Origin: Ylistrum balloti
Taxonomy: Eukaryota
Assembly: GCF_031769215.1 (NCBI RefSeq)
Contig: NW_026782092.1
Coordinates: forward strand, 434,001 to 498,000
Direction of reading: 5' to 3'
DNA length: 64,000 nucleotides
A program made the translations under genes and the position numbers. Below, one piece after another: positions 1,903-41,498 of this stretch; position 1 is the first letter of the stretch, and every line of letters begins with the position of its first letter. Under the pieces are notes generated by a model. The model did no database searches, was not told the origin of the DNA, and saw only the letters and a list, made by a program, of their open reading frames with translations.

Positions 1903-3956
1903 AGGAGAAGTGCCAATTTAGGCTTTCTGGTGGCCATGACGAATACTTTTTATTTTTTGTCTATTAAAACCTTGAGGTCAGACGGTAATGACTTGACATT
2001 AATCTAAGGTCAGCTCAAGGCTGTTCAGTTGTTATAGGGTCACGAGTGGGGGATAAAATTCATAATTATTGCAATAATTATCAAATTAAAATATTTTTTT
2101 TAGTTTTTTTCTCTTAAATGTCATTTGATGATATATTTCAAAACCTTCATTAGAAAAAATGACCAAAACTTATGCCATTGTTGAAAAGTAGGTCACGGTA
2201 ACTAAGTGCCCTAATTACTAATTAAGTCACACTTGAGCACCGTTTTTTGTCTTAATGCATCTATAAACAATACGTTTATCACGTGCAGTGTATTTATTTG
2301 AAATACTTTTGTATGAATAGGAGCAATGAAGAAGTTACAGTCAGGGTAAGAGAGGCATGCCATTTAAATAGACTAGTTACAATTTAAAGTGCAAGAGCAC
2401 TAGTCACTATCTTATTCCGGTTAATGAAAATGAATATTGAATTATACTGTATGAAAAATTATTTCAAATAATTTTCACAGTATAATAATTCTTCCGTGCA
2501 TTAGTTGTATTCTTGAGCTTTAACATAAGATGGTTTGACACTAGAGCTTTAACATAAAATAGTATGACATCATGACATCTCCCTGATGTATACCTTGTTA
2601 ATGGTCTTGTTTCAAACACTAGCAAACTTCAGTAATCTACAATGCAGTGTATGTAACACATGGTATATCCAGATATATAAGTATACTTTGTTCTGTGCAG
2701 TTCGTACATGTATTGACTTATGCACATATCTTGTGTATCACTAAAATGTTAAATATAATTTCATTCATACAAGAATGACATATATGTAATAGTATTATAG
2801 TATTTTGTTTAGTTTTTATTAACTTTTTGTTATTTTTGTAAAATGCTAGTACACAAACAGTGTACTTGCTGCAAAGCAGATTATGAAGTCAGAATAAATT
2901 GTCTGAATCAGGCAGATGTTCTGTCTTTCGTGAAAGATAACATCAATAAAGATTTATGTTTAGGTGACCCTGTATGTAAGAAATGCAGAGGGAGATTCAA
3001 CAAACACCATGAACCAGTAGAGCATTCTAACAGTGGTTTAGACCATCAGAATGAGACATCTGACTCTAAAAGAATCAAACTTGATATTCCACGAGCTACG
3101 CTTACTGAATCGCGATGTTTCGTTTGTGGAAAGTCCAGAGATGAAAAAAGGTGTACAATCTTTGGATTGAATATTCAAATGGACTGACCCCAATATCAGG
3201 CTGATATTGTCAATGTAAGGTTGAGGCCAGAGTAGTCGGCTGCTGTGCCCACATTGCATCTGTCCTATGGTATCTTTCTTATGACCGACACCAGTCTGAT
3301 ACTGCACGAACAACTGCCTCCTCAAGTTTCCTTAGTTGTGTTGATGACGCAATGACGGTGGAGAACTGTTCAGATTTTGACAGCGACAGTGACTCCTAAA
3401 TGAATATCCCAACACCACCATTCCCCTTACTAAAGCAGTAAACAAAAATACAATCCTGTAAGTAATAGACAAAGGTCATTTATAATCCTGTGAAGCCTGG
3501 TGATAATTTTTTTTCCATTATAATATCACCCATATTTGCAAAAAATATTTCAAATAAATACAATGCACGTGATAAACATATTGTTTATAGATGCATTAAG
3601 ACAAAAAACGGTGCTCAAGTGTGACTTAATTAGTAATTAGGGCACTTAATTACCGTGACCTACTTTTCAACAATGGCATAAGTTTTGGTCATTTTTTCTA
3701 ATGAAAGTTTTGAAATATATCATCAAATGATATTAAAGAGAAAAAACCTATTAAAAAAAAAGATATTTTAGTTTGATAATTATTGCAATAATTATGAATT
3801 TGATCCCCCACTCGTCCCCCTCTATAACAACTGAACAGCCTTGAGCTGACCTTAGATTAATGTCATGTCATTACCGCCTGACCTCAAGGTTTTAATAGAC
3901 AAAAAATAAAAAGTATTCGTCATGGCCACCAGAAGGCCCAAAATGGTACTCCTCCT
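1903..3956 (+). mobile_element. Non-autonomous DNA transposon with ~410-bp terminal inverted repeats and AGG termini (Kolobok-like, tentative), internally deleted
   Basis: About 1903-2312 is the reverse complement of about 3540-3956 (e.g. AGGAGAAGTGCCAATTTAGGCTTTCTGGTGGCCATGACGAATAC vs GTATTCGTCATGGCCACCAGAAGGCCCAAAATGGTACTCCTCCT). The flanks ATAA/TTCG are not a clean TTAA TSD. Confidence 0.85.
2843..3399 (+). pseudogene. Transposase remnant: N-terminal Cys-rich part fused by deletion to a C-terminal SWIM zinc finger; catalytic core missing
   Basis: ORF 2843-3187 (CTCC...CKKC...IKLDIPRATLTESRCFVC); from ~3152 a different frame reads YNLWIEYSNGLTPISG*YCQCKVEARVVGCCAHIASVLWYLSYDRH...DSDSDS* (SWIM CxC...CxH). 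Confidence 0.75.
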
Positions 3957-5399
3957 TTCGGTGTGCGAGAACCAGAAGTCGGTGTTTCGTTTACATTTAA
4001 AGTTTTCATATCTAAAAAAGAGTCCAACATTTTCAAATATTTTACGTTTTCATTTTGCAAGATTTTGAAAGTACATACTTTAATAATTTAAATGATAATT
4101 AAATAATTTGGAACAGTTCGTGCTTATTGAAAAAAATATGATTAAATAATGCACATTGTCTTACACCCATTGCTCGCAGTACTCCGTCACATCACAGGCC
4201 CTAGGGACCTTTTCCTATTTTTAAACGCATGCCCTCAAGGTGCTGCACAAATCACCAAGTGGAGTTTAAATTTGTTCTTTGGAAAATTATCTTGTTATTG
4301 AAAGAGGTCCTTTTCTAGATTTAACAAACAGGAAAATTGTTTGGTTTCGATCGAACTTATCTGAGGCAAGTGTGGATTTCCGACGGAAAGTTGTTTCTGA
4401 TCGGAATAGACTGTGGCATAGTCAATCGCTATACATGTATATGCATATGCATATTCGGCAAAGATAAAGATGACGATGAAGCACAGTAAACACATATTTT
4501 TGCATTGGGTCTATGGTCTATGTATCTAACATACAGAACGGAATTTGGCAACAATTGATCAGTATTTTTGCTTTACAGTTTTACCAACTGATTTTTTTAA
4601 TAACATTTGAATTCTAATGATTTTGTTTGATCACGAAAAAAGGTCTGAAATTAAAGATTAAAGAATACATCATGCCTACCTGTACAGGTTTAGAAGATCA
4701 AATGAAATTACAGTAACATAGATCAGATTTCAAATACATAGGGTGTTGGCCAGAGGAGATTACTGCAGAATTGTCATTGGAAGGGAGGTAACTCTTTCAT
4801 TAACGCTAAAACACTATACAAACGGTAGGTAGACTAAATATAGAATTACTGTAGATTATAGGTATTACGTCCAGGAACACTGTTATAGTTATGTAGTGAC
4901 TGTTACATTCACAGTGTAATTTATAAGTTCTAGTAATAGGTCATGATTTCGACCAAAAATAACTGAGAGTTCTACAGCCCTTCACGTGTGCCTGGCTTGA
5001 TCATACCAATGTTAAACTGAAAGAATACAATCCAGAACTCTTCTTCTCATCAATCAAACAATCAAACTAAGCAGCCCTACCAAATATGTCATACATATCC
5101 ACACAGCTTCCATTCAATTTTGCCTTATAGGATTAGCTGATGCTTTATACACAAAATATATGTATCCGTGAATTTGATTGGTTAGTACGCTTTTACGCCG
5201 GTCAAAACATTTCACAGGATGTATCATGACAAAGTAGTTTAATACGGCTGTATTTGAAAGAGTTTCTGTCCTTTGTTGGTTTCATTATGTGAATCTCCAA
5301 TATCAGTTTTTGACTGATTTCATACAAACATGGTATGTAGGTTTAACCACCATGACAAGGAGTTGTGTTTTATCTGAATGGCAGTGTGAATCAAACTTT

Positions 5400-6620
5400 G
5401 ATTTCACTTTTTAAAAAAGAGGTGCTGTCCTTGCTGTTATCCAAAATGTCTTACGTCCGCGGTCCGTAGCCCGTGGTTCATCCGTGGTATGGACGTTCGT
5501 AAACTCTTATTGTTGTAGGTATCCCGTTAGACGTACCGAATGGATCTTTTACAAAGTGCAAGTATAAATGCCCCCTGACACGTGATGGGGGCACTTATGA
5601 GTCCTGAACTGATCATAAAAACAGAATGGCTGTCAGGCGGCTATTTTTCATTTGGACAAAAACAGGTGTTATTGCTATTTCTTGAGATGAACTGGATGGA
5701 TCTTATCAAATTCCATAGGTAAATGACGAAACCCTTCTTTGGTCTCTCGTTGTGCCCCTTTGATCATGAGTGTGATCAGAAAAACGAAATGGATGACCGG
5801 GTAGCCATCTTGGATTCTTATTTACCGAGAAGTACTATATGAGTCAAATTTCATATGTAGATTCAACTTGATCACTAGTTGTGCCGTCTGATTTTGGGAT
5901 TGATGATAACAAAATGGCCGAAAAGCTACACTATTGAATTAGGGAGTTTAAGAATATTATCGCTATTTCTCAGAGGGAACTTCAAATTTCAGATTCAGAG
6001 CAAAAAAGAGGAGATATTCACCTTTAAAAAGTAAAAAGAAAGATCAGACGATGACGGTCGTCAAGATTCCTGTAGGATCTCTTGTCACCATGTTAATATT
6101 GTCTGGAGACCTACCCTCTCCGTTGTCAACCAATTCCTTTCAAACTTAGTAGTATTTATCATCATAACATGAAACTGTGGGGGTTTTTGAACGGCATCTT
6201 GATCCGACTGTATTTGGGAGAGTTACTGCCCCTTGCTTTTTCTTAACGTTATCATTGATAAAGGTCTCTCTCAGATTTGCACCGATTTTTGTTTTTGCTT
6301 TTAACTTGACAGCTTTTTAATCATGACATGGAATTGTGTTTTCCTTACACAATAATTCGATTCAAAATCGTTGAAGGAGTTTTTTCCTTTTCAAAATATT
6401 TTTTTTTTCTAAACGTAAATTTGCTTCCTCGATTTCACACCAATTTCTCTGGATCTTTTGGAGTTTTTAACTATTTCATGAAATTGTGTATGCCTTCATG
6501 GCATCGTGATTTTACAAATTAAAATGAGTTATTGCCCTTAGTCTTGTTCAATATTTATATTTTGTCCGGATATCTCCTCCCTCAGGTTCAACTTATTTAT
6601 TTGAAATTTAGTACATGCAA
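5400..6620. repeat. Probable decayed bivalve Helentron/HINE-type interspersed repeat
   Basis: GTCCG-type microsatellite-like start, GCCATCTTGGATT and GAGTTA(C/T)TGCCC(C)TT motifs typical of these repeats; boundaries approximate. Confidence 0.3.
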
Positions 6621-8322: not shown

Positions 8323-9435
8323 CTACAGTTGCTCGCATACACTAAACTTTTCTTTAGTACACTGTATATCTAGGGTTTTACCGAGATCTGACCGTAAACT
8401 CAAGCAGTTTGTATCACCGAGTGAGGGGGCACCGGTTGTGAACAGGTCTATATTCACCATCGTACCGTCGGAATATACCCAGGTACCGTCTACTTCCTCG
8501 TCCGTCCCATCCACATATACTTGCACATTGAGATTGGTAACAAGGGTGGCTATTTTTTCACTGGTGTCAACTTTCGCTAGTTTACCTCCCATGCTGTTAC
8601 AATGAAGAATGGCATTCTCATAATTATTTCGCTGAGAATCTTCAATTCGATAGCAGAAATTTACACGTTCATCAAACACGAAGTAGTTTGTATCACATAC
8701 CGTGCAAAGAAGTGACATTGCCGACCATTGTCCATCTGTCTGACACCACGTGTCCGGATTTCCTTTCGTCACTCTTCCACTCTGACAACTGTATGTGAGG
8801 ACCGTTCCAACTGACCTATCTGGTGTATTGGGAGTCGTAGCGCCTATCACAGTTGGCGGATTTCCACACTCGACCGGATTCCGACCTTGAGTAGTGGTCA
8901 GTTTAGTGGTCAACCCTGTGGTTGATAAGGATGTCTGTGTGGATGTTACTCTTGTTGTATCTAATTTGCATTCCTTTGTCACAGTCGTTTGAATATATGA
9001 ACAGTTTGTTTCCAACCAGGGCAAGCACTTTGAATTTCCATTAGACAACTCCACACATAAAGACGACAAATCACAGGAATGACCAGCACACGATTTTAAT
9101 AGTTGTGTTTCAAAATGCATTAACCTCGTTCTTGTTGATGCTACTTCCTCCTGGTTGGACGAAGTAGTGATATATGTGTCGTTATCACCAAGGTAACAGT
9201 TCATATTCTCTAGGTTATATGCCACTGCTTTGCAATTTGTCCGTAATAAACATTCCCTAGTACATTGCTGTAGGCCAATATGTTCAAATACCAAAAATAC
9301 TTGCTGAGGCAGACGTTGTTTTACTTCAAATTCTGTGTTTATGAAGTTGTCCTGACATTTTTGGGATATGCATGTTGACATCCCAATAAATATAACTATG
9401 ATTCGAAACAATCTTGAGATTCCCATCCTCAACAT
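8323..9435 (-). CDS. Secreted PAN/apple-EGF-like-Thr-rich-CCP(sushi)-C-type lectin protein, family copy 2, complete, single exon, 370 aa
   Basis: Signal-peptide-like N-terminus; PAN-type CTRECLLRTNCKAVAYNLENMNCYL; SCAGHSCDLSSLCVELSNGNSKC; Thr-rich linker; sushi CGNPP...YSC...WCQTDGQW...C; CTL CY...NYENAILHCNSMGGKLAKV...VYVDGTD...GTWVYSDG...C...C...VCE. Confidence 0.92.
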   Translation of the reverse strand: MLRMGISRLFRIIVIFIGMSTCISQKCQDNFINTEFEVKQRLPQQVFLVFEHIGLQQCTRECLLRTNCKAVAYNLENMNCYLGDNDTYITTSSNQEEVASTRTRLMHFETQLLKSCAGHSCDLSSLCVELSNGNSKCLPWLETNCSYIQTTVTKECKLDTTRVTSTQTSLSTTGLTTKLTTTQGRNPVECGNPPTVIGATTPNTPDRSVGTVLTYSCQSGRVTKGNPDTWCQTDGQWSAMSLLCTVCDTNYFVFDERVNFCYRIEDSQRNNYENAILHCNSMGGKLAKVDTSEKIATLVTNLNVQVYVDGTDEEVDGTWVYSDGTMVNIDLFTTGAPSLGDTNCLSLRSDLGKTLDIQCTKEKFSVCEQL

Positions 9436-10615
9436 GTATCAAAATGCATTCGTACACGAGTGAGTCAGATGGTCATCCTTAAACAAGTAGATAAGCTTAC
9501 AATCATTTGTGACTGTGGCGTTAATGTATTGATTCTAAAGTAACCAACCAATGGAAGGTATAATAGACCTTAGGAACAATTCCTGACGACAATAATCATA
9601 GGAATTAGTGTCATACCCTTGCATGTTTTTCATTTCAAATCCCTGGAACATTGTGACATGGCTCTAATCTTCAAAGCAATCAACCTTGTAAGGAAAATGG
9701 TATTTTCTTTGATATCCAGTGTGCATTATAAGTACTTTGGCTTTTGCCCAAATTCTCGTTCCAAATAATATTAAGAATGAGAGTTAGGCGGTTAACTGAT
9801 TTCAAAGTGATATGGTTGGCAATTGTATCAATTGATTCCTGTCAACCAATTGTAAGAACTATCGACTTTGTGAGCAAAACAAAAACCATCGATATATCAT
9901 GCGACATTTTACATGTGTGTATCAACATAGTTGTATTCATATTACCTTCAACTTCAGCATGGCTTCACACACGTACCCATGCTCGAACGTACACACATTT
10001 AACGTAATTATTATAATTGCCTTTTACCAACGAGCATAGTAAATAAGAGATGTTAATTACATATTTTGACTATAATGTTAGGCATAAAAACAATATCATA
10101 TAAAAATGAATAAACTATTTACGAAACGAAAAAATGCTTCTTCTCTTTTTATTCTTGATAAACGTCAAATCCATTGGTCCATGTTGAAGTAGTCATTATG
10201 ACGTTACATACCTGTTTGTCAATCAATGTGTCAGTAAAACTTTTTGGATATAGGAGTTATATCATTTGAAAATCGATAGAGTGTCAGCAAATAAGGTCTA
10301 TACTCTTTGACTTCTAGAAAAGACACATAATTCTACTATTACACATCTACATGTTATTTTCGAATGTGATTTTTCATTGTAAGAAAAATCATTTAGATAG
10401 CATGAAAGTCAAGGAGTGAAGTTTGATATACTTATCTGTTTATTTCAAATGGGCATGTACCTATTTTATAAAATCATATGCCGTTTTTGAAAATAGAAAA
10501 AAAAATGAACCCTAAATAACAGCCTTGATAGATAATTTACTTTAAGAAAAATAAGTTAACAGTAGACAAGGCAGATATCACAGTACTGTACATAACATAT
10601 ATTATAACTCAATCC

Positions 10616-11055
10616 CTACCTTATTTTTTCTAATTCTAATTTTAATGTACAACGAAAGAGTTCTGTTTCAATTTCTGGAACGTGACGAATAACATTATCC
10701 CCTTTTAGGAAATAGTTTTCTATTCTAGGAAATCCTTTAATCTGATCCTGTCCCAGGATAGTAGTCAACTGCTCTAGAATATGAATACAGCTGTCACGTT
10801 TATGACTATCGTCGTCGGTATCGTTTGGCCAGCTATCGAACTGATGAAGCATGAACATCTTTAGATGGTAGCTACATAATTTCTTGATCTTCTCGTCGTG
10901 TTCTCTTTTTGTCTCCTCCAGCAGAGTCTTCAGGAAACGAAAAATAGGTTTTCTGATGCTTTTATCATTTCCACGATTTGCGTGAAGAATCAGCTGCTTC
11001 TCTGCTGCTGAAAATGAAATCCTCCACAAAAGTTTTCTTTCTTGTTCGGGATAAT
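10616..11055 (-). CDS. cGAS-like receptor (Mab-21/cGLR), last coding exon (C-terminal helical lobe)
   Basis: LWRISFSAAEKQL, FLKTLL, LCSYHLKMFMLH, IENYFLKGDNV are Mab-21/cGAS C-terminal motifs; acceptor TTATTGTAG|AT in phase 1; TAG stop at 10616-10618. Confidence 0.9.
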
Positions 11056-11653
11056 CTACAATAACAACCAAAAGACCATCTTTTCAACATAATCTAAACT
11101 CAAATCGATTAAAACTATAGTAAAATATGCACAAAAGAAGGATTTACACGGAGACTACTGAAAAAGCACACGGATAATATGACAAAGTGTTTCGGAAGAG
11201 TTAACGTCTTCTGTTTCAACCGTCATGAGAATTTTTCGTAAATCTATGTAACTGTTGTCACGTTTTTAATGGAGAATACAGTAAGAAAGTAACAAAATAT
11301 TACAACAAAAACTGATTTTTTCCCCACTGGTTGCTGTAAACAACTTTCTTCCATGAAAGATATAAAGTGAATTATCTTTTCCTATTCTCCTGGGTTTTTT
11401 TTCAGTATATTTAACAATTATCTTTAATTCTACCCACAGAAACCTTCATTAAACACCAGTAAGATAATTACATTTTTGAATTAAGACGAAACATTTCTTT
11501 TTGACTGATGTACAGATTAATTAATTTTGTATAAATTAGCATTAGTTCAAATCAGTATCAAAATCAGTCACGTGGTGTCTGAGTATTTTCATTTTAGCAC
11601 AGTTATTGCCAATGTTCCAACACATAGATAAAATTGTTGATAGCGATACTTAC

Positions 11654-11869
11654 CGGTCTCTGGACACGATTTAGCGACAACGTGGATTTTTTCCTTACAT
11701 TTATTCCACAGCTCATCGCTGTGGATCCAGTTTGGTGGCTTCTGTCTAAACTGTTTCGGCCAACCTCTGACTTCGATGCTTGGAACTAGATCAATGTCAA
11801 TAATTGGTTGTCCTCCTCCCGGGTTGTATAATATGGTATACGCTGGACTGTCCATGTCTTTTTTCTTTC
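11654..11869 (-). CDS. cGLR coding exon with third catalytic Asp
   Basis: DSPAYTI...IDIDLVPSIEVRGWP...HVVAKSCPET; acceptor TTTATGTCAG|GA, donor G|GTAAGT; 216 nt, phase 1-1. Confidence 0.9.
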
Positions 11870-12535
11870 CTGACATAAATTAAGAAACATTTTGGGTTTT
11901 TGTTAACAATAGATACAATGTTAACTTTAGGGCGAAACAAACATGAATTCTCAACTTTTAAAGTCCATTTTGATGATGTGCATGAAAACCCTTTAAATGA
12001 CATCATGTAGTTTAAGTCATTTGGTTATGATGATGATGCCTGTTATAATAACATTTGATAGTGTTGTGTATGTGAATTCAGTAGTGGTGGTAAGGACGTT
12101 GGATTAATAACATCAGGCTCACAGTCATTGTATATTGATTGTTGGATTGATGCATGGTTAAATGATCTGATACCTGATGGATGTACATGGTGGAATACAC
12201 AACTGGTAGTTTTGTGTATGCTCGTCGGTGTGATTAGTAGGTAAATATATTTACCCAAGAATTTTGTGAAGGTACTACATGTGTTGGTGTTTGTGGGTGG
12301 GTGTGTGCGGTTTTTTTTCTTTAAGGGTTGGTGGTAAATAATGTTTCTTAATAACGTGATGAATTAAGATTGCCCATTGAATGTCAAAATCTACAAAAAA
12401 ATTAAAATTCACGAACATTAACCTTTTTCACAGAATAATTATCGACACAAAATACAATTAAAGCAGGATATATATATATATCTTCTTTATGTGTAACGGC
12501 TAAAAGGGGAAGGGGATAAACAATACATTTCCTAC

Positions 12536-12752
12536 TTGTCACATTCCTACTATTAGCTGCCTCGGCAAATTCGTGGAACGCCAATGTTTTAAACTTTACA
12601 GGGTCCAGGAATTCTCCTGTCATCAGTTCAACTCGGTTTGTTTTTCTGAGGCCGATTTTGCAGAAGCCCTTTGGCATATCATTGTTCCATACAATATAAG
12701 CATCCATGCCCGTGGGTGATATCATAAAGTCGAATTCGTCGGGACTCATATT
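12536..12752 (-). CDS. cGLR coding exon with PDEFD catalytic motif
   Basis: NMSPDEFDFMI...GFCKI...FLDPVKFK; acceptor TTATTCAG|AAT phase 0; donor A|GTAGGA is weak (an alternative phase-1 donor lies 12 nt earlier). Confidence 0.85.
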
Positions 12753-13169
12753 CTGAATAATAAACGAATAGATACTGGTTATCGTAAACTCGTTGTGTAT
12801 CTGATTTATAAATATGTATGTTTACAAAACTAAGAACAAGCTATGCCGCAAATGAAAATGCAATTATTACTCAATCATGTGTTACTTAAACATTTGTTAA
12901 ATGGCATTGAAATACTAAAAGTAAAATTATCCATTATCTCTGGAAAAAGTTACTAACCATAACCAAATCAGACCTTGACCGGTATGTTATATGTATTTAA
13001 CTGCAAAGCAAAATATAGTTCGTTTTATGTATCTTTTAAAAGGTAAATGAGCGGAAACGAAACTACAATGCACATTATGAAGCCTGGTAAGCTTATACAA
13101 ACACCTGATATCCTGCACTCTCACTCCGATTACTTATATTTATTGCAATGCAAAGCAAATATCGCTTAC

Positions 13170-13382
13170 CTTCGTTCTATCATAATAGGATCCGGAAGTA
13201 AAGATGTCCCAGTTGAAAATGCTATTGTCATTAAGGTTCTTCCTAAATCGACGGTCGCCTTCTATGAAGTCCTTCACTATTCCAGCAGCGATATTGATAT
13301 CATTTATACGAAGTCGTGCGGTCTCCATACGTTGTGATAAATATCCACCCGGATTATTGAGTCGGGGAGGCAATTTTGGTGT
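13170..13382 (-). CDS. cGLR coding exon with spine helix and GS activation loop
   Basis: ...IFTSGSYYDRTK; acceptor TCTTTCAG|ACA, donor AAG|GTAAGC; 213 nt, phase 0-0; joins the next exon as SGSYYDRTKNMSPDEFD. Confidence 0.88.
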
Positions 13383-14324
13383 CTGAAAGACCATGCAAAA
13401 CTCATTACCGAACGTGTCATACATATCTTTGAAGTTTGAATTATACTACATTTAAAAAAAACAATTTTTAGTTGATAGTTAATATAGTTAATATTGCTTG
13501 TACAGTAAACCAAACAAAACTGCATTTTATAGCTGTTCCGTCCTTCTAAAACTTGTTAGTAATGTCAGAATGAGGAGAAGCACTGGCCCTAAAAGTCAAT
13601 AAATGTTCTTTTCATATATCTGGATTAAAACGAGACATCCAGAATATGACAAATCTCGGTGAGTAAATGTTCATCAGGAGTGCCTACCACATGCAATCTC
13701 GAAGATCCCTTAATAAAAAATACTGTACGTTCAAATAATAATTTAAATACATCATATATCTGGTTAGTCTTTCTAGGATGACAATGACCTGAATATTGAA
13801 ACCTATTATAACAGAAGCCGAGGACAACGGACAGTGATAATTATTATTTGGATTGTAATTGTTACAAATTACTGAAATGTTTGTTCTTCACTTTTCAAGC
13901 GAAGAGAGAGATCCCGATTGGATTATCGCCAGATGAAGCAAGTCAAGTAATTACCTTGTATATTTAGATTTTTTTTCTAATGTTGTTCAACGTTATATCG
14001 CTTAGAAATATTCCCAGATAAATTCAAACCGAAATGGCTGTAGAAGACGTGCTTTATTCCTTAGTAAACACTATTACTCCTCATTTTAATGCGAGATTTC
14101 AATAGCATGCATTCTTGTTAATAATGTAATAATTCTAACTATCAGAGATTAAATTCTGAATAAGTATTCTTGCGTTATCAATCATACTTTGTAACGTAAC
14201 AATTTTTGTTTTTCCATGGGATTGATTGGAAAATATGTATATCATATACGGGAAAACCTATGAGCACAACCTCGTGACAAATGGATAATCTACCTCATTC
14301 ATTCAGATGGAGAATCCTACAAAC

Positions 14325-14480
14325 CTGAGGCTTATCTGGCGTGACATCAGTCTTCAATGGCGCACCTACTTCGTCAAACACAGGTCTTTCTTTACTAGTT
14401 GTATCATCATAAACCGATCCAGAGACTTTCTTAACAGGCATGCATAAGGCTTTGGTCGGTTCCTTCGGGGTCATTAGAAT
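14325..14480 (-). CDS. Putative low-complexity linker exon between ZnF array and cGLR domain
   Basis: Open 156 nt (ILMTPKEP...VTPDKPQ), donor CAG|GTTTGT phase 0; acceptor AAAGCAG has a poor pyrimidine tract, so the 5' boundary is uncertain. Confidence 0.55.
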
Positions 14481-14847
14481 CTGCTTTGCAATCTTTTTGT
14501 TTAAAACAAAGTATAGAGTAAAACAAGTACATTTACAAATTTGTTGATGGACTTTCAATTTGTTTTAAAATATCTTTGGTAATGTGACGAACTGGTGTCG
14601 ACACTTGCATAAATTTGTGTCACATCACATAGCTTTATCAACCCACTCCGTTGTTGATCAAATTTTGATTTTATCTTTATACGAGGTGAACTTTTAAAAC
14701 AGTAAAATCGACACGGCAGTAGCAACAACAATAAGATAAAATGATAAAAAAGAAATACCACAAGGCAATTCAAAAGTTTGTTCAGAAATGATAGAACAAG
14801 CACGCGAAAAAAAGTTATCTTAACGGTGAAAGCTTTTAGATAGGTAC

Positions 14848-16392
14848 CTCGTTTGATCCAGGAAAGCGAACTGCCACCGTATCCGTAGCCTTACACTTCT
14901 CACTGACATCAGTGTGCATTTTAGTCTTATGTCCCTTCAAAACGGACTCAGTTTTAAAATCGTCCTTTCCACATATTTCACATGAAATGATGTCACTACC
15001 ATTATTATTTGGAATATTTGGTCCTTGTGCACCGCAATGCATTTTAGTCTTATGTCCCTTTAAACCGGCCTCGGTTTTAAAATCGTCCTTCCCACATATA
15101 TCACATGAAATGATGTCACTACCATTATTATTTGGAATATTTGGTCCTTGTGCACCGCAATGCATTTTAGTCTTATGTCCCTTCAAACCGGCCTCAGTTT
15201 TAAAATCGTTCTTTCCACATATGTCACATGAAATGATGTCACTACCATTATTATTTGGAATATTTGGTCCTTGTGCACCGCAATGCATTTTAGTCTTATG
15301 TCCCTTCAAAGCGGCCGCAGTTTTAAAATCGTCCTTTCCACATATATCACATGAAATGATGTCACTACCATTATTATTTGGAATATTTGGTCCTTGTGCA
15401 CCGCAATGCATTTTAGTCTTATGTCCCTTTAAACCCGCCTCGGTTTTAAAATCGTCCTTCCCACATATATCACATGAAATGGTGTCACTACCATTTTTAT
15501 TTGGAAAGTTTGGTCCTTGTGCACCGCAATGCATTTTAGTCTTATGTCCCTTCAAAGCGGACTCAGTTTTAAAATCATTCTTCCCACATATATCACATGA
15601 AATGGTGTCACTACCATTTTTATTTAAAAGGTTTGGTCCTTGTGCACCGCAATGTATTTTAGTCTTATGTCCCTTCAAACCGGCCGCAGTTTTAAAATCA
15701 TTCTTCCCACATATATCACATGAAATGGTGTCACTACCATTTTTATTTAAAAGGTTTGGTCCTTGTGCACCGCAATGTATTTTAGTCTTATGTCCCTTCA
15801 AACCGGCCGCAGTTTTAAAATCGTCCTTTCCACATATTTCACATGAAATGGTGTCACTACCATTATTATTTGGAATATTTGGTCCTTGTGCACCGCAATG
15901 CATTTTAGTCTTATGTCCCTTTAAACCCGCCTCGGTTTTAAAATCGTCCTTCCCACATATATCACATGAAATGGTGTCACTACCATTTTTATTTGGAAAG
16001 TTTGGTCCTTGTGCACCGCAATGCATTTTAGTCTTATGTCCCTTCAAAGCGGACTCAGTTTTAAAATCATTCTTCCCACATATATCACATGAAATGGTGT
16101 CACTACCATTTTTATTTAAAAGGTTTGGTCCTTGTGCACCGCAATGTATTTTAGTCTTATGTCCCTTCAAACCGGCCGCAGTTTTAAAATCATTCTTCCC
16201 ACATATATCACATGAAATGGTGTCACTACCATTTTTATTTAAAAGGTTTGGTCCTTGTGCACCGCAATGTATTTTAGTCTTATGTCCCTTCAAACCGGCC
16301 GCAGTTTTAAAATCGTCCTTTCCACATATTTCACATGAAATGGTGTCACTACCATTATTTGGAATATTTGGTCCTTGTGCACCGCAATGCAT
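14848..16392 (-). CDS. Exon with 12 tandem C2H2 zinc fingers (41-aa unit), predicted N-terminal part of the cGLR
   Basis: Unit CGAQGPNxxNxNGSDxISC(D/E)ICGK(D/N)DFKTxxxLKGHKTK(M/I)H = C-x2-C-x4-F-x5-L-x2-H-x4-H. The ORF ends ...GSNE|GTACCT, a phase-0 donor; without splicing it stops at 14836. Confidence 0.8.
14912..16392. repeat. Coding tandem repeat, 123-bp unit x12, with a 4-unit (492-bp) higher-order duplication
   Basis: GGTCCTTGTGCACCGCAATG recurs every 123 bp; in protein order units 1-4 = units 5-8 (apart from a 1-codon deletion in unit 1). Confidence 0.97.
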
Positions 16393-16584
16393 TTTAGTCT
16401 TATGTCCCTTTAAACCCGCCTCGGTTTTTCAAATCGTCCTTTCCACATATATCACATCTAATGAAGTGATTAATAATTATCCATGCAGATTCGGGTTCTT
16501 TAGATTAATCGTGCAGTTTTGTTTGGTGATCTTTTAGACCGGCTTCCGTTTTGAAACCTTCTTTTCCACCACACGTGAATTCAC
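16393..16584 (-). pseudogene. Disrupted 5' part of the ZnF exon: two degenerate fingers with an in-frame stop and a +1 frameshift
   Basis: Acceptor TATGTTTTGCAG|G at 16585; EFTCGGKEGFKTEAGLKDHQTKLHD*...CDICGKDDL, then CTCGGTTTTTCAAATC (9 nt) versus CTCGGTTTTAAAATC (8 nt) in intact units. Confidence 0.7.
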
Positions 16585-17417
16585 CTGCAAAACATATTGA
16601 TACAACCGATTATGGCGTTTTTCTAAACTCGAAAATTGACAGTTGCTTAACCTATTAAAGGGGGTTTTAGAAATTATTGCTAATTCGATCAAGTTAATTT
16701 TTCTTAAGTCACCTCCAAGGTTTTAAACTATTTGGCCCTTAGGCTTACTGACAAGGCATAGACGGACGAAACAATTGTATGATGCACTTTAATCCATTAT
16801 TTGGTTCTTCTTTTGAATTCTTATTTTTTTTAATATTCAGTGTGTGTCTATTGTCAATATTTAAGATTGCAAGTGATAGACACTGCCACGTTTTAATTCA
16901 TTCAAGTAGTGATAAGATTCAGAAGCTTAAATCGCCATATAAAGAAACGATTCCTAGTGTGCCAATAAAATAGGCTAGCATGATACATGTCGCCATGCTT
17001 TCCTATTTATAAAATTGCCCAAAGTGTTGAGTTCTTCACATTGGAAACACAACCGTATATTCTCGGACCCTTTGATTATTTGTAAGCAGTTAAACCAATT
17101 TAATCTTGGAAAAATCATTCATTTTAAAAGAAGATAAAGTAAGTATAAAACTTTATTTTTGGTAAATAATGATAATAATTATAGTAAATGTTTAACTTTA
17201 TACATGAAAAACCTAGCACAAAATAAACAATATGTTTGAATAAGACATAAATCAACTTGCCTTGCGCAAGCATTCCTATCTACCATTAATATTTCGTGAT
17301 GGAATTAATTGCAGCAGTTCTATCCTGGAACAGGGCATTTTACAATAGCATCTCGCTTTATCATAATGTAGGAGAAAGCGTTACAAACATTGAAGTTACT
17401 AGATTGAAGACAACCAA

Positions 17418-32948: not shown

Positions 32949-33706
32949 ATGAAGAACTGGATATCATTATGGTCACTGCTACCATTTCTCTTTGTAGCAT
33001 CGGTTGCTACCTATGGGTGTCAGGATAATTTTATATTCAATGCGTTTGAATTTCAACAACGTTTATCTCAGCCAGAGTTTTTGTTATTTAAGGAAGTTGG
33101 AATTCAGCAATGTTCTAGAGAATGTTTGTTACGGACAAATTGTACAGCAGTGGCGTATAGCCTAGAGAAATTAAACTGTTACCTTGGTGGTAACGGTACA
33201 TATATTACTACTTCGTCCAACCAGGAGGAAATAGCATCAACAAGAACGAGGTTAATGCAGTTTGAATCAAACCTTTTAAAGTCATGTGCAGGTCATACTT
33301 GTAATGTGTCGTCGGTGTGCGTGGAGTTGTCCAGTGGAATATCAGAATGTATGTCTTTGATTGTCATTATGATTGGGAATTAAGCAGTATAAACATTGAA
33401 TCGACGTCCACAACATATGAAAGTACATTGCTTACATCGGAAGAAACAACAATGCGAACGACAGCATCGGGCATAGAATTGACCACTTCACCAATCATGA
33501 TCACTAATTAAGACCAGAATCCAGTCGAGTGTGGAGATCCCCCGACCGTTATTGATGCTATTAACCCTATTTCGACAGAAAAGTCTGTTGGAACGGTTCT
33601 TTTATACAGTTGTGAACTTGGATGGATACCTACTGGTGATGGAGAGACGACATGTATGTCGGATGGAATTTGGTCAACAGTGTCACTAACGTGTATGGAT
33701 ATTTGA
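32949..33706 (+). pseudogene. PAN-EGF-Thr-CCP family copy 4; frameshift after the EGF-like module and a stop before the CCP (may yield a 144-aa truncated secreted protein)
   Basis: ORF 32949-33383; the shifted frame continues with a Ser/Thr linker, TAA at 33509, then intact DQNPVECGDPP...YSCELG...TCMSDGIWSTVSLTCMDI*. Confidence 0.85.
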
Positions 33707-36172
33707 TAACAAAAAATGACATCACGTGCGATATAATCATCATTTATGAACCGTGTATAAAAGATAGATAATCTGAGATTACAATTGTGTAAGTAATGTA
33801 AAAAATAATAGGTTTAACAAATTGTAATCTAATATTTTTTCACATGAAAGATATTTTTCATCACGATCCAGTGATCACTGTAATAACAATAACTATGTAA
33901 AAAGAGTTGTCATTAGTTCAAGGTCCCCTTCAGTTCGATATTGACATCATCATTACAAGAGTTCAGACGCATTGTAACGATGCCAAAAAGTAAGAGATTG
34001 AGTGAGAATATCGCTAAAAGTCGCAAATCAGTCTATTGTTATAAAGTTTCGTTAGACGCCTGTTCAAGGACAAAGGTTATATAATATATAGAGTGTTACT
34101 TCCGTTCCCGTTCTATATGCAATAAACAGTGTTTTTAATTTAAACATATTTCATATGAAAAATTGAAAAGGAATTGGACACACGTTATGACAACTAAGAA
34201 ATGCCCTTTTCCATCAACAATTTAACGGTGGAATCATTGAAATTATTGACAATGTTTATGATGTTAAACAAATACCTTAAGTAAAAAAAGAAAAAAGGAA
34301 ACATTAATATGATTCATTATACAATAATCATAACATTGTTTATACCATTGGTTATACCAGTACCCACAGTTTGCATTACATTTACGTATAGTTACATTTA
34401 GAATCCAAGTTACATATATCATAACTGACAGGAATCATCGATAATTTGTTACATCAGATAACATTACTAAGCACGACAATATCTTTTTATATAGTGTTGT
34501 ACGTGTAAACGTACAACAAATAGTTGTTATCATTAAAACTTAGTACATCAGAACCATGAAGTATAATATCAAGGTTGATAATAAAACATAATCTAGACAG
34601 TTTCCTAAACAGAATATCACGGCAATCGTTGTATTGGATAGTGAAAATTGTTTTCTAATGGGTAAGAACAGTTGCATGCTGGAGACAAGACTATATTAAT
34701 TTTGAAGAGATGAATAATGTGTTACTTACGTTTCCGTTCTATATACAAAATTAAGAACATGGTTTGATTGCTCATGATTGTTGCAACAACCAAGCAAATA
34801 TATTACATAAATGAATTGACTTGCTGACTGCTATCTATAAATGTAAGTCATAAATCTTAGTGAGGAATAAAATGTACGAGTGCAATGAGATCGAGATTTG
34901 GTCTGTACTATGTATTTGTATTGGATAGAAGCATTGCCGCAGTAGAGAAAAAAAACTGTCTTTTTAAAAATACGGTGATGAATCAATTTCTAATCATTGT
35001 TCTTCTTTCCTTAGTGTAATGGGTTACATTAAGATGTAGTTAACTGTAGATGTTGTTGACCCCGTTCAATCCGAATCCTTAATAATATTCAATTGTTCTG
35101 TTCAAATGCATTTTCAACTTATAGATCTTCTCGCAATTTTATTTGTTTTAACCAAAGTAAGGGGCGTCAGATGATTTCTTCGTATATTGACTGTAGTAAT
35201 TCGTGACTAAACAGTTCACACCTGTCCAAGGGCTCTCATTTGGGGTTTTACTAGCGCGTCCTTCGAAGTAACTGACCATATGCACTCATATAATCAAATG
35301 TGATGTTTTATTCATTGTTGACCTGAATTTATGATATCAGGGATTTAAATTCAAAATGAGTTCGATATGCACCGTACTATTACGGACTAGCAGATGTGCA
35401 ACATATATGAAGGCTACAATATATACCTATATAGCCATGGCTGCACGGGTCACCGCGTCTAAGTCTGATAAAATCACTCATCCATGACTGACACTATTCT
35501 ATCTGTGCGCTCACATGGTAACGATTCGACTGGCGCTAAGGGGACCTTATTCTGTTCGTGGCATAGGCATATTTCACTTTAACTTAACTTTCACCAAAAA
35601 CAAAGAGAAAAAAATTGAACAAAATCATAATCAAATATTCATACTCATATTCAATAAAATATTTACACGGAGACATCTGCACAAGAACAAGGAGAATAAG
35701 ACCATGTGTATCAGAGGAGTAAGCGTCTTCTGCGTCATCGACAACACCCGCCATGTAAATCTCGGTCAATCCAAGTAAATAATGTCACATATTCAGTGGG
35801 AGTAAGGTATACAACAACGAAACCCATAGACAAACTTTCAAATTCAACACTAACTCTCATTTTACATTTCGTGTTGTGTAACCAAATCAGATGTATCTTT
35901 CACTTTACCTTTTGTTTAAAAAATACTACCTTCCTTGTCGTGTCAGCTGTAACTTTGACTTTACATTTCGTGTCGTGTAGCGAAATCAGCTGTAATATTG
36001 ACTTTGACTTTGAACACATCGGCTGTGCTATATTGATTTTTGTAGCTTTTTGTCCTTGAAGACGATAAGTTAAATTGTAGCTTTGGAATAAATATCCTTA
36101 AGCTGAAGTTACACCTTGGAACCACTGTTAAACATGATTACATTTTACGAGTGCATTCTTATAGCTGCTAGA

Positions 36173-36723
36173 ATGAAAAGCTGGATATTGTTTTTGTCAC
36201 TACCTCTATTCTTCTGCGTAGTATCGGACGCTACACGTGAATGCAAGGATAATCTCATATCGATATCGTTTGACGATTTTTTTTTTATTTGAACACATTG
36301 GCATACAACAATGTTCTGGGGAATGTTTGTTACGGACAACGTGTAAAGCAGTGACTTATAACCTAGAGCATTTGAACTGTTACCTTGGTGATAACGACAC
36401 ATATATCACTTCTTCGTCCAACCAGGAGGAAATAGCATCAACAAGAATGATATTGATGGAGTTTGAATCAAAACTTTCAAATTCGTGTGCTGGTCATTCT
36501 TGTAATGGGTTCTGGTGGTGTCATAAACCCTGCTTCGACAGAAAGGTCGATTGGAGCAGTTCTTACGTACAACTGTGCACCTGGAATGATAGCTGATACT
36601 GAAACGGCTGGAATGATAGCTGATAATGAAGCGGCCGGAATGATAGCTGATAGTGAAGGGGAGACCGCGTGCGAGTGAGATGGAACTTGGACATCAGTGT
36701 CACTGTCATGTGAATATCTGTGA
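36173..36723 (+). pseudogene. Family copy 5 (parent A of the tandem array): frameshifted leader, deletion after the PAN, interrupted CCP
   Basis: MKSWILFLSLPLFFCVVSDATRECKDN is out of frame with FEHIGIQQC. Upstream GCATTCTT(A/G)TAGCTGCTAGAATGAA is shared with copy 4. The CCP is out of frame, with 27-bp repeats and E*DG. Confidence 0.8.
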
Positions 36724-38808
36724 CTGTACAACGTCAAGTGATGTATTTTGCAAACCGGACATGATAGAAATATACCGTGATTATGATTAAATCATTATGA
36801 GAGATATCAACATTAATACAAATATGGAAATAATCCTGGAAAACTGACTTGCTCTGCTGTAAATCAACTTAAATGGATATCATAAATCATAAGTTAATAA
36901 GAAGATTCTGCTTCAATATATCTATTTGAAGGTTTTCCAGTCGTTTCTATTATAATGCTATGGATTTTAGTGTATTATGTTGACAGAAAAGACAGAAAGA
37001 TTGAGTGTAAATTTCGCCTGCTGAAATTTCAAGTTCATCTGACCCATCTAACGATATTTTATTTTTAAGAATGCAAGTAAAAGGTCCCGAGCTATTGTAA
37101 ATGTAGGCTTTTTCGCTGTTTTTCAGTGGTTTTCGCACATGAAAGTATCACACTAGAATTTTACAACATATCAACAAAACTAACAGAATATAATGAGTTA
37201 GTTGTCGTTTATATCTGCGATTTTTAGATATTTATCATGCTAACACACTGATTAATGTTTAACTTTATACTTCTTAGCACGCAATTTTTCAGCGTAACAT
37301 TATCGGGTAAAATTAGAAAAAGTCAATAGACGAGACAGGTGAAGCAATCGAAGGTAATTAGGTACAATGGGAAATGGTGATTATTTACCTGTTCAGTGTC
37401 TAATTCGTCACATCACGCTCAAAAACCCGCTATAATGTATATCATATACTTGAAACATAATATAGCAAATGTGAACAAATGTTTTATTTTTATGTCATTA
37501 AGACCTAAGCTTACCATTTCATGAACAAAGTCATAAATTTGTTTTTGCCTTTTAACCATAGCGAGTATTCTTTCTCCTCATAGTTCAAGTCTTTTTTCAT
37601 GTTAAAGTGAAAAATGAAATGAAAAAAGTTAATGTGTGCTGGTTTAAAAAGAATTAAGCACATGTACTTCAGGGTAATTGATTATGCTGTAGGATCGAAA
37701 TTTTTGTTTTATAAATAGAATCTGAAATGTTAATTTCTTTCCCAAAACCTTCATAAATATCAGTGCGGTCTCTGTTTCCTTTTATCTGGGATCTGCAGAA
37801 CAAAAATAATCTATCTTTGCTGATATGGGTGTTTGGGATTTTTTTGAACAACATCTGTATCTCGAGACATTCCATTGTTTGGCTCTTCTGTATTCAAATC
37901 TAAAGTTATATTACAAGGTGATTCACCTGTGTATCTTTTGTATTACAATATACAAAAGAGCAGAAGCAGACATTACATCTAAAAAGCTGGACAGAAAAAA
38001 ATAACATCAAAACAAAAAACAAGAAAAAAAAAAAAAAAAAAACAAAACAAAACAGAGTGCTGCACTGGTTAAGGTCATAATTACATATTTCCTGATGTAC
38101 TTCTCTGTAACAGAAACGTTGTCGCGAAAGGGGTAAAGGTTTCACTCGAAATTACCCGACATTACGGACATACTTGTCCAAACGATTATATCGAACTTAC
38201 CCTTTAGTTTCTAATTGACCTTTAATACCTTCACATGATCACTTTGAATACAGATTCATTATTGGAGAACGAGAACTGGAATTTTTGCGATGAATTGTCT
38301 TTCATGAATGACATTGTATTCAAAGGATGCGGGATAAAGAAAAATTACAATTTATCAGATAAATCACCATATACACCTCCTTTAGAATAATATTTGTGTT
38401 CTAGTCTTGTGAGTACCTTTGTTTGTTCACGGTTTTGTTAGAAAATAACTGAATTAGGCCAACAGAATTAACAAATCAATAACATTTTTTGTTTTAAACT
38501 GCTGTTCTGTATTATGCCTGGGGAGTTCCAGTTCCAGAAGGTGAAGAAGTTATGTGATATTGCTTCATGTGTAATGGTGATATTCACTCCGGCATAGCTT
38601 ATCACTTAGGTGACGACTTAAGCTTTACGACCGAATCGTCCGCTTGATTTGCGAACACAATGAATCAATGGTCCCTCATTTAATTTTTATCATTTTGAAA
38701 TCACAGCTGATTGGTTACTTTGGGATATCCTAATGTTGCAAGTGCTACTTAGAGTACATTCTGCATTACGATTGTAAGTGTCTTAGTTGGAACATTTCTA
38801 TCTTGAAG

Positions 38809-39255
38809 ATGAGAAATTTTGCATTTTTCAAAGCCCTATATCTGTTTGCTTCTGTATCGTCAGTTGCTTGCCATGTATGTGAAGAACTTTTTATGAGTAG
38901 TGTGTTCGAATTAAACCAATGTCTTTCCCCGCCTGTGTTTTTGGTATTTGAACAAATTGGCATTCAGCAATGTTCAAGGGAATGCTTGTTACGGACAACG
39001 TGTAAAGCAGTGACTTATAACCTAGAGCATTTGAACTGTTACCTTGGTGATAACGACACATATATCACTTCTTCGTCCAACCAGGAGGAAATAGCATCAA
39101 CAAGAATGATATTGATGGAGTTTGAATCAAAACTTTCAAATTCGTGTGCTTGTCATTCTTGTAATGGGTTCTGGTGGTGTCATAAACCCTGCTTCGACAG
39201 AAAGGTCGATTGGAGCAGTTCTTACGTACAACTGTGCACCTGGAATGATAGCTGA
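38809..39255 (+). CDS. Chimeric family copy 6 (5' from copy 9, 3' from copy 5): signal-PAN plus frameshifted Cys/Trp tail, 148 aa
   Basis: ATG at 38809 (the track starts at the upstream TTG); MRNFAFFKALYLFASVSSVACHVC...CLLRTTC...SCACHSCNGFWWCHKPCFD...CTWNDS*; out-of-frame CCP remnant to ~39408. Confidence 0.7.
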   Translation: MRNFAFFKALYLFASVSSVACHVCEELFMSSVFELNQCLSPPVFLVFEQIGIQQCSRECLLRTTCKAVTYNLEHLNCYLGDNDTYITSSSNQEEIASTRMILMEFESKLSNSCACHSCNGFWWCHKPCFDRKVDWSSSYVQLCTWNDS

Positions 39256-39340
39256 TACTGAAACGGCTGTAATGATAGCTGATACTGAAACGGCTGGAAT
39301 GATAGCTGATAATGAAGCGGCCGGAATGATAGCTGATAGT
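39242..39340 (+). repeat. 27-bp micro-array (GGAATGATAGCTGATACTGAAACGGCT) inside the dead CCP; 3 copies in array unit 1, 4 in later units
   Basis: GMIADTETA-type repeats in ORFs 36463, 39122, 41812, 44509. Confidence 0.9.
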
Positions 39341-41498
39341 GAAGGGGAGACCGCGTGCGAGTGAGATGGAACTTGGACATCAGTGTCACTGTCATGTGAA
39401 TATCTGTGACTGTACAACGTCAAGTGATGTATTTTGCAAACCGGACATGATAGAAATATACCGTGATTATGATTAAATCATTATGAGAGATATCAACATT
39501 AATACAAATATGGAAATAATCCTGGAAAACTGACTTGCTCTGCTGTAAATCAACTTAAATGGATATCATAAATCATAAGTTAATAAGAAGATTCTGCTTC
39601 AATATATCTATTTGAAGGTTTTCCAGTCGTTTCTATTATAATGCTATGGATTTTAGTGTATTATGTTGACAGAAAAGACAGAAAGATTGAGTGTAAATTT
39701 CGCCTGCTGAAATTTCAAGTTCATCTGACCCATCTAACGATATTTTATTTTTAAGAATGCAAGTAAAAGGTCCCGAGCTATTGTAAATGTAGGATTTTGT
39801 CGCTGTTTTTCAGTGGTTTTCGCACATGAAAGTATCACACTAGAATTTTACAACATATCAACAAAACTAACAGAATATAATGAGTTAGTTGTCGTTTATA
39901 TCTGCGATTTTTAGATATTTATCATGCTAACACACTGATTAATGTTTAACTTTATACTTCTTAGCACGCAATTTTTCAGCGTAACATTATCGGGTAAAAT
40001 TAGAAAAAGTCAATAGACGAGACAGGTGAAGCAATCGAAGGTAATTAGGTACAATGGGAAATGGTGATTATTTACCTGTTCAGTGTCTAATTCGTCACAT
40101 CACGCTCAAAAACCCGCTATAATGTATATCATATACTTGAAACATAATATAGCAAATGTGAACAAATGTTTTATTTTTATGTCATTAAGACCTAAGCTTA
40201 CCATTTCATGAACAAAGTCATAAATTTGTTTTTGCCTTTTAACCATAGCGAGTATTCTTTCTCCTCATAGTTCAAGTCTTTTTTCATGTTAAAGTGAAAA
40301 ATGAAATGAAAAAAGTTAATGTGTGCTGGTTTAAAAAGAATTAAGCACATGTACTTCAGGGTAATTGATTATGCTGTAGGATCGAAATTTTTGTTTTATA
40401 AATAGAATCTGAAATGTTAATTTCTTTCCCAAAACCTTCATAAATATCAGTGCGGTCTCTGTTTCCTTTTATCTGGGATCTGCAGAACAAAAATAATCTA
40501 TCTTTGCTGATATGGGTGTTTGGGATTTTTTTGAACAACATCTGTATCTCGAGACATTCCATTGTTTGGCTCTTCTGTATTCAAATCTAAAGTTATATTA
40601 CAAGGTGATTCACCTGTGTATCTTTTGTATTACAATATACAAAAGAGCAGAAGCAGACATTACATCTAAAAAGCTGGACAGAAAAAAAATAACATCAAAA
40701 CAAAAAACAAGAAAAAAAAAAAAAACAAACAAAAAAACAAAACAGAGTGCTGCACTGGTTAAGGTCATAATTACATATTTCCTGATGTACTTCTCTGTAA
40801 CAGAAACGTTGTCGCGAAAGGGGTAAAGGTTTCACTCGAAATTACCCGACATTACGGACATACTTGTCCAAACGATTATATCGAACTTACCCTTTAGTTT
40901 CTAATTGACCTTTAATACCTTCACATGATCACTTTGAATACAGATTCATTATTGGAGAACGAGAACTGGAATTTTTGCGATGAATTGTCTTTCATGAATG
41001 ACATTGTATTCAAAGGATGCGGGATAAAGAAAAAATACAATTTATCAGATAAATCACAATATACACCTCCTTTAGAATAATATTTGTGTTCTAGTCTTGT
41101 GAGTACCTTTGTTTGTTCACGGTTTTGTTAGGAAATAACTGAATTAGGCCAACAGAATTAACAAATCAATAACATTTTTTGTTTTAAACTGCTGTTCTGT
41201 ATTATGCCTGGGGAGTTCCAGTTCCAGAAGGTGAAGAAGTTATGTGATATTGCTTCATGTGTAATGGTGATATTCACTCCGGCATAGCTTATCACTTAGG
41301 TGACGACTTAAGCTTTACGACCGAATCGTCCGCTTGATTTGCGAACACAATGAATCAATGGTCCCTCATTTAATTTTTATCATTTTGAAATCACAGCTGA
41401 TTGGTTACTTTGGGATATCCTAATGTTGCAAGTGCTACTTAGAGTACATTCTGCATTACGATTGTAAGTGTCTTAGTTGGAACATTTCTATCTTGAAG

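Follow-up and report, generated by a model that had tools for sequence, protein, structure and literature searches.

Here, we present an analysis of a 64,000-nucleotide stretch of DNA from Ylistrum balloti (NCBI RefSeq assembly GCF_031769215.1, contig NW_026782092.1, positions 434,001 to 498,000 of the forward strand; hereafter the window, with all coordinates counted from its first letter). Positions 10616-16392 on the minus strand probably hold one gene, a scallop-lineage member of a bivalve clade of finger-bearing cGAS-like receptors (cGLRs), in which an N-terminal array of C2H2 zinc fingers, grown by tandem duplication and with an accessory role, precedes a Mab-21 core. We give this reading as a whole a probability of roughly 0.7, and the fusion of fingers and core in a single gene is, by sequence comparison, likely. 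An earlier note on this DNA had placed the array ahead of the cGLR in one protein, which is the most likely arrangement given that the same architecture occurs across the clade and that the introns match those of oyster cGLR1. The note had also regarded the architecture as uncharacterised, and in this it was mistaken. The architecture is not new, because the oyster protein CgcGAS, with three fingers and Mab-21, was cloned in 2021, the biochemically studied Cg-cGLR1 and Cv-cGLR1 fall in the same clade, and curated databases hold it (Swiss-Prot P0DXB9 has two such fingers). What is new here is the size and the youth of the array.

The gene model of 928 aa (2787 nt, no internal stop, GT...AG at all junctions) was rebuilt from six minus-strand exons, which join in phase as the earlier note had described. 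Pfam and homology searches were run on the exons separately. The features of the locus, including the open reading frame (ORF) of the fingers, are as follows, in the direction of transcription:

16393-16600, minus strand: two relic finger copies 5' of the start codon, found by reading the sequence and by three-frame translation
14836-16392, minus strand: finger ORF of 518 codons with its own stop at 14836
14848-16392, minus strand: exon 1, with the ATG, 12 C2H2 fingers and a unique 22-aa tail; donor GAG/GTACCT, phase 0
14915-16457, no strand assigned: 123-bp tandem repeat, 12.6 copies, 93% matches, called by Tandem Repeats Finder (TRF)
14325-14480, minus strand: candidate linker exon, 52 codons, 156 nt, both ends in phase 0; donor CAG/GTTTGT
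13170-13382, minus strand: Mab-21 exon 1, 71 codons, ending ...TSGSYYDRTK with the GS motif; acceptor tctttcag/, donor AAG/GTAAGC, phase 0
12536-12752, minus strand: Mab-21 exon 2, with the catalytic EFDF motif; donor in phase 1
11654-11869, minus strand: Mab-21 exon 3, with the third acidic motif IDIDLV; donor CCG/GTAAGT, phase 1; Pfam Mab-21, 1.2e-5
10616-11055, minus strand: last exon, with the end of the Mab-21 nucleotidyltransferase (NTase) domain, the Mab-21_C helix bundle and the stop; Pfam Mab-21_C, 8e-13
10439-10444, minus strand: AATAAA polyadenylation-type signal, about 170 nt past the final stop

The assignment of the core to the cGLR family is based on both of its halves, as the Pfam families Mab-21 and Mab-21_C were matched on separate exons and the NTase core and the C-terminal helix bundle are thus both homologous. 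The best solved match to the last exon is the 'cGAS-like receptor 1' structure PDB 8gjw (E=4e-21), and the core is 33-42% identical to bivalve cGLRs and 73% identical to a partial model from the scallop Mizuhopecten yessoensis. The active site is laid out as TSGS-x11-EFDF-x86-IDIDLV, with the acidic triad and the GS motif present, and the corresponding layout in Cg-cGLR1 is KSGS-x11-EFDF-x95-IDIDLV. The strict regular expression used by Li et al. 2023 to define cGLRs, h[QT]GS-x8-20-[DE]h[DE]h-x50-90-h[DE]h, does not match the core for the sole reason that Ser replaces Q/T before GS, and the active Cg-cGLR1 mismatches likewise. The zinc thumb of vertebrate cGAS (H-x5-CC-x6-C) is absent from the 356-aa core.

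The comparative evidence for the fusion comes from relatives of this core. An exhaustive search with the last exon returned 98 of them, and the best full-length ones consist of N-terminal C2H2 fingers followed by Mab-21 and Mab-21_C. Between 1 and 7 homologous N-terminal fingers precede the core in its nearest full-length relatives, which are oyster, mussel and Solemya proteins:

Mytilus coruscus CAC5406814.1: 1153 aa, 7 fingers
M. galloprovincialis VDH93276.1: 780 aa, 3 fingers by regular expression
M. trossulus XP_063404085.1: 3 fingers
Solemya velum KAL5014422.1: 2 fingers
Crassostrea virginica 'cGLR 1 isoform X5': 3 fingers
Swiss-Prot P0DXB9, Cg-cGLR1: 2 fingers

With the Mizuhopecten model added, the architecture that the earlier note had proposed to seek in other molluscs was therefore found in oysters, mussels, Solemya and another scallop. 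Finger number is 2 in Cg-cGLR1, 3 in CgcGAS, 2-7 among Mytilus species and isoforms, 8 in Mizuhopecten and 12 in the window. Fingers are present in 12 of the 16 clusters whose score against the window core exceeds 130 bits and in none of those below 113 bits. Further, a maximum-likelihood tree of 37 cores places all 11 finger-bearing rows, the window included, in one clade of 15-16 rows, with supports of 92 and 89 in the Shimodaira-Hasegawa-like approximate likelihood ratio test (SH-aLRT) and of 96 for a starred set, and fingers occur in none of the 21 rows outside. The signature C..C-x3/4-FK[ST]..GL..H.[ST][KR].H, which all 12 window fingers carry, is common to oyster, mussel and scallop fingers, and the fingers are for this reason taken as homologous. 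On these sequence grounds, the fusion goes back at least as far as the ancestor that oysters, mussels and scallops have in common, and it may have arisen earlier, since fingers, though more diverged ones, also occur in the protobranch Solemya.

Gene structure points the same way. At the Crassostrea angulata cGLR1 locus, three Mab-21 introns match those of the window in position and phase:

Shared intron 1: after ...YYD[KR]TK, phase 0
Shared intron 2: after ...RRTQ / ...NVT, phase 1
Shared intron 3: after ...FPE / ...PET, phase 1

The C. angulata exons were mapped by hand, and the locus is not an exact translation of the oyster protein isoform used. This oyster gene has about 10 exons, with its two fingers on separate exons, and the exon homologous to 13170-13382 (68 aa, against 71 aa in the window) is internal, with finger exons and small linker exons ahead of it. 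That relatives produce fused mRNAs is demonstrated by the cloned CgcGAS cDNA and by a 2058-bp Logan contig (SRR21102233), which holds an uninterrupted, intron-free ORF of 615 aa with fingers and Mab-21.

The array itself contains exactly 12 fingers by regular expression, the number that the earlier note had counted, all of the form C-x2-C-x13-H-x4-H and all in a single exon (Pfam zf-C2H2_4, E=7.5e-25). Each unit of 41 aa is made up of a 23-aa finger, ISC[DE]ICGK[DN]DFKT..[GAV]LKGHKTK[MI]H, and an 18-aa linker rich in Gly, Asn and Pro. In the unit identity matrix, units 1-4 equal units 5-8 at the nucleotide level except for one codon absent from unit 1, so that blocks of four units make a 492-bp higher-order repeat, and this identity points to a duplication of 492 bp in the very recent past; units 9-12 agree with one another at 95-97%. 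Variation lies in the linker and to helix positions 1-3 (A/E, A/S, G/A/V), with the zinc ligands and the Phe/Leu core residues invariant across all units, and the split of the variable codon columns into about 10 nonsynonymous and 7 synonymous suggests moderate coding constraint. The opposite strand of the repeat is open too, as an antisense shadow of 541 aa (14912-16537, plus strand), and a long finger ORF is for that reason weak evidence when taken alone; the 45% identity to the Mizuhopecten finger array and the invariant zinc ligands place the array beyond chance.

Two finger types were considered for the array and rejected. Typical JAZ/U1-type fingers have the pattern C-x2-C-x12-H-x5/6-H. 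The earlier note had likened the array to ZNF346/JAZ, and this analogy fails: all 12 fingers have H-x4-H with 13 residues between Cys and His, none of the 12 has the spacing of JAZ/ZNF346 or U1/matrin-type fingers, the Pfam jaz family PF12171 gathers 42 bits summed over the 12 fingers with no single stretch passing, and no JAZ-type structure is among the top 50 Foldseek matches. Classical DNA-reading arrays have a period of 28 aa, TGEKP-like linkers and varied base-contact residues at helix positions -1, 2, 3 and 6. An array of the Zif268/KRAB-ZNF type does not fit the 41-aa period, the absence of TGEKP linkers and the 18-aa linkers, which are predicted to be disordered by AlphaFold2 (AF2), nor the restriction of helix positions 1-3 to the few residues given above. 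In the AF2 model of two units, the beta-beta-alpha fingers have a predicted local distance difference test score (pLDDT) of about 80 and the linkers of less than 50, which is a beads-on-a-string arrangement. Foldseek with this two-finger model, which is unable to separate finger subtypes, gave generic C2H2 matches only, none of them significant (E>=0.011), and a PDB sequence search with four fingers gave marginal matches only, some of them spurious (DARPin).

The 5' end of the gene carries traces of older fingers. The first relic copy, similar to finger 1 of the Mizuhopecten protein, is a frameshifted 13th repeat copy ('FIRCDICGKDDLKN...'); its frameshift is a single base pair in an A-run, either real decay or a homopolymer assembly error. 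The second is an older, diverged finger ('EFTCGGKEGFKTEAGLKDHQTKLHD', with a stop at its end). Both are probably 5' untranslated region or decayed coding sequence. No upstream ATG in the finger frame was found in 16393-16600, and translation would begin at a Met inside a repeat unit.

These traces bear on the view that the locus is a decaying gene or an assembly artefact, that is, a collapsed or over-expanded repeat or a young pseudogene without a proper start. The complete nucleotide identity of units 1-4 and 5-8, the frameshifted copy, the missing upstream ATG and the open antisense strand could all be taken in its favour, as could the variants listed for exons 4-6, where 10 are nonsynonymous and 6 synonymous. 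We nevertheless consider it highly improbable, as 928 codons are open over six exons, the catalytic motifs are preserved, the listed variants include no stop (in itself weak evidence), and the zinc ligands are invariant. Sequencing depth speaks against it as well. Five runs with this DNA were found (X1-X5), all of them genomic-like, with even depth over introns and exons, contigs crossing exon borders and no splice joints, and they show that the locus is present in other individuals. In four independent DNA runs, contigs over one repeat unit (14966-15100) reach a summed depth of 265-336, and those in the flanks roughly 15-30. This is about 10-16 times the flanks and fits about a dozen copies, which argues that the array is no gross assembly artefact.

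The same four runs reveal two features of the last cGLR intron. At about 11116-11269 lies a high-copy interspersed repeat, with a depth of 3800-6400 against about 20 in the flanks and many loose ends at its borders. Additionally, the 39 bp at 11075-11113, 19 nt 5' of the last-exon acceptor and near the likely branch-point region, are missing from all four runs, an intronic indel between the assembly and the other individuals.

The junction between array and core would be formed by the candidate linker exon. The earlier note had named its acceptor as a weak point, and the boundaries are indeed uncertain: the splice site actually used may be one of two in-frame acceptors further upstream, by 4 nt (after 14484) or by 12 nt (after 14493). 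When the Mizuhopecten linker was compared with 13-15 kb of the window by tblastn, the match fell exactly on the linker ORF (E=0.021; 'VLNKKIAKQILMTPKEPTKALCMPVKK--VSGS' against 'VHGKEIVKQAAIPCKEVMKENCIKVKNESPTASGS') and extended 5' of the acceptor first proposed, to 14507; an acceptor a few codons further 5' is suggested because the match runs upstream of 14480. The length of the linker ORF was rejected as evidence for the exon, ORFs of 85-96 aa being found at other places in the AT-rich region. Whether the linker exon is included or skipped, the fusion keeps its frame, since phase 0 applies to the finger-exon donor as well as to the acceptor at 13383 and the linker is 156 nt long.

Several observations weigh against one fused gene with an accessory array, and they are gathered here. 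The donor GAG/GTACCT is weak, agreeing with the consensus at 6 of 9 positions, and a second in-frame donor of the finger exon, GAT/GTCAGT, lies after 14908. The score of the tblastn linker match was reached by 60 of 2000 shuffles (p about 0.03), and the linker exon thus has thin, though positive, support. At 13424, 14 codons 5' of the acceptor of Mab-21 exon 1, an in-frame ATG could start a stand-alone cGLR of 375 aa, and by analogy such a product would probably be active, because the published active constructs begin at the equivalent exon border. All runs found for this species are DNA and hold no transcript evidence, and the support for the fusion is consequently comparative. The Mizuhopecten protein is a gene prediction that has lost the C-terminal half of Mab-21 and continues with non-homologous sequence after Mab-21 exon 2. 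The 5' end of the window gene, with its frameshifted 13th finger and no upstream ATG, looks partly decayed, and misassembly may have produced part of the identical 492-bp blocks. With regard to function, an avidity role for this array is a tentative proposal that we hold at somewhat less than even odds. A simple comparison with a polybasic tail fails across the clade, because the N-terminal region of M. coruscus is acidic (isoelectric point, pI, 5.0), although the window array is mildly basic (pI 8.6) and the oyster N-terminal regions are more so (pI about 9.4); the fingers are conserved clade-wide and the linker charge is not.

Some of these observations would suit two separate genes, a poly-zinc-finger gene ending at 14836 and a cGLR beginning at ATG 13424 or at another first exon. 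The stop of the finger ORF lies only 4 codons beyond the proposed donor, the 375-aa ORF is in frame with Mab-21 exon 1, cores of that extent from relatives are active in vitro, and the runs found are all DNA. Against this stand the homologous fingers fused to the core in most of the nearest clusters and in cloned or assembled oyster mRNAs, the fused orthologous model of Mizuhopecten, and the internal position of the homologous first Mab-21 exon in the oyster, matched in the window by a good acceptor, tctttcag, exactly at the conserved start of that exon. Moreover, no AATAAA or ATTAAA signal occurs within 745 nt downstream of the finger ORF stop (such signals appear near 14058-14090), and no stand-alone array of this finger type was found in the length range searched, 285-906 aa. 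Taken together, we regard two genes as improbable and favour the single fused gene.

A further view holds that both forms are made, a fused transcript from the upstream promoter together with a finger-less cGLR begun at an internal start, or else isoforms lacking the linker, such that promoter choice or splicing would regulate finger content. Skipping the linker keeps the frame, several donors and acceptors are in frame, as is the ATG at 13424, and relatives vary in a comparable manner: the RefSeq isoforms of M. californianus (836 and 923 aa, with 4 and 5 fingers) are one finger unit apart, and those of oyster cGLR1 span 540-634 aa. All oyster isoforms listed keep both fingers, however, and an internal promoter left no sign in this analysis, which makes regulated production of both forms quite improbable in our judgement. 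The variation in M. californianus suggests one finger unit per exon in Mytilus, because the isoforms differ by a whole unit.

For the single fused gene, we propose the following course of events and mode of action. The array would have grown by in-frame tandem duplication of a 123-bp unit within one exon to 12 intact fingers, the latest step being the duplication of four units (492 bp), and its copy number may shift fast through unequal recombination. The core, judged from its relatives, would be a nucleic-acid-activated cyclic dinucleotide synthase that signals through STING. The array would be an accessory module of independent beads on flexible linkers, offering multivalent, low-specificity binding, most likely to nucleic acid, and raising avidity or clustering on long ligands without being the primary sensor. 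Such an accessory role is suggested, at least for Cg-cGLR1 and Cv-cGLR1, by the finger-less cores, which already sense long double-stranded DNA (dsDNA) and make 2'3'-cUA; in these two proteins the finger module is dispensable for dsDNA-dependent activity in vitro. This activity of finger-less cores also limits the idea of the earlier note that the array could be a multivalent sensor or length ruler. A stronger version, which we consider rather doubtful, is that the array is a tunable multivalency module in which copy number (from 2 to 12) sets a threshold of ligand length or concentration, or the degree of clustering. If this were true, bivalves would tune the sensitivity of a cytosolic DNA or RNA sensor by repeat expansion and contraction, and each finger would be a weak, independent binding bead for nucleic acid or another polymer.

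The locus is of interest beyond this species. Sensing of dsDNA has so far been shown for no invertebrate cGLRs other than Cg-cGLR1 and Cv-cGLR1, and the natural proteins of their clade bear fingers that were cut off in the biochemical work and are unrecorded in the domain tables used there. Among the cases found, the window gene has the largest array (12 fingers, followed by Mizuhopecten with 8 and Mytilus coruscus with 7), and this array is visibly young, which makes the gene a good natural reagent for studying the role of the finger extension in binding, threshold and clustering. For genome annotation, the case illustrates that such genes are easily split or misnamed, as with the scallop orthologue labelled 'ZBTB49'.

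Beyond the cGLR gene, the window contains lectin-like ORFs at the following positions:

8323-9435, minus strand: single-exon ORF of 370 aa with PAN, Sushi and C-type lectin domains (Pfam 2e-5, 4e-6 and 2e-10), directly 3' of the cGLR gene and on the same strand
32949-52823, plus strand: cluster of PAN/Sushi ORFs at 32949, 38803, 41493, 44190, 46874 and 52122

Three ORFs of this cluster are 150 aa long and spaced by 2.69 kb, and the cluster looks like a tandemly duplicated lectin-like family.

Among known systems, the nearest relative and the best database match of the array is the Mizuhopecten yessoensis gene model (P0001, 559 aa). Its array is 45% identical to that of the window and has a period of 41-42 aa, it is fused via a linker to Mab-21, and its sequence is 73% identical to Mab-21 exons 1-2 of the window. 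It differs in having 8 fingers and in that its first finger has a start codon where the window copy is frameshifted. The protein is named 'Zinc finger and BTB domain-containing protein 49' ('ZBTB49'), although its sequence is that of a finger-array cGLR and no BTB domain is among the Pfam matches listed; it is probably both misnamed and truncated. With its Mab-21 part as query, only the Mizuhopecten protein itself was returned and no closer scallop orthologue.

The Mytilus orthologues (M. coruscus, M. californianus, M. edulis, M. trossulus and M. galloprovincialis) also have homologous fingers before Mab-21 and a core about 40% identical to that of the window, but their units are longer, about 86-100 aa, with acidic linkers and C-x2-C-x12-H spacing. 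Human cGAS is a functional analogue only. Its N-terminal tail is an unstructured polybasic segment, a non-catalytic extension that, like the array, could add DNA binding or multivalency to a Mab-21 core; the tail has no zinc fingers, and the window core has no zinc thumb.

A further relative is CgcGAS of Crassostrea gigas (XP_019920349.1, 590 aa), whose cDNA was cloned in 2021 (Qiao et al., PMC8218723). It shares with the window protein fingers of the same signature (e.g. CHICGKDDFKSEGGLSRHITTVH), the linker, Mab-21 and Mab-21_C, with a core 39% identical, but has 3 fingers at a 53-aa period with basic linkers rich in Arg, Gly and Ser, in place of 12 fingers at a 41-aa period. The protein was detected as a hemocyte band of about 60 kDa, its expression was induced by poly(I:C), and the full-length recombinant form binds dsDNA (dissociation constant, Kd, 1.6e-8) and poly(I:C) (Kd 2e-7); that the fingers might help in recognition was suggested there as speculation only (PMC8218723). 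No published study of finger function in bivalve cGLRs was found in the literature searched.

Finally, Cg-cGLR1 (P0DXB9, XP_011418942.2) and Cv-cGLR1 were both shown to respond to long dsDNA with the synthesis of 2'3'-cUA (Li et al. 2023, preprint, PMC9980059). The constructs used were N-terminally truncated and finger-less, starting at the first Mab-21 exon ('SLSNFILSF...' and 'SVAPNF...', respectively); the domain table lists Mab-21 alone for Cg-cGLR1, and the main text never mentions zinc (PMC9980059). The structure PDB 8gjw is such a finger-less core. Both proteins belong to the same clade as the window protein and share its SGS-x11-EFDF...IDIDLV layout and its three Mab-21 intron positions, and Cg-cGLR1 additionally has two homologous fingers. 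They differ from it in that the published work on them covers finger-less cores only.

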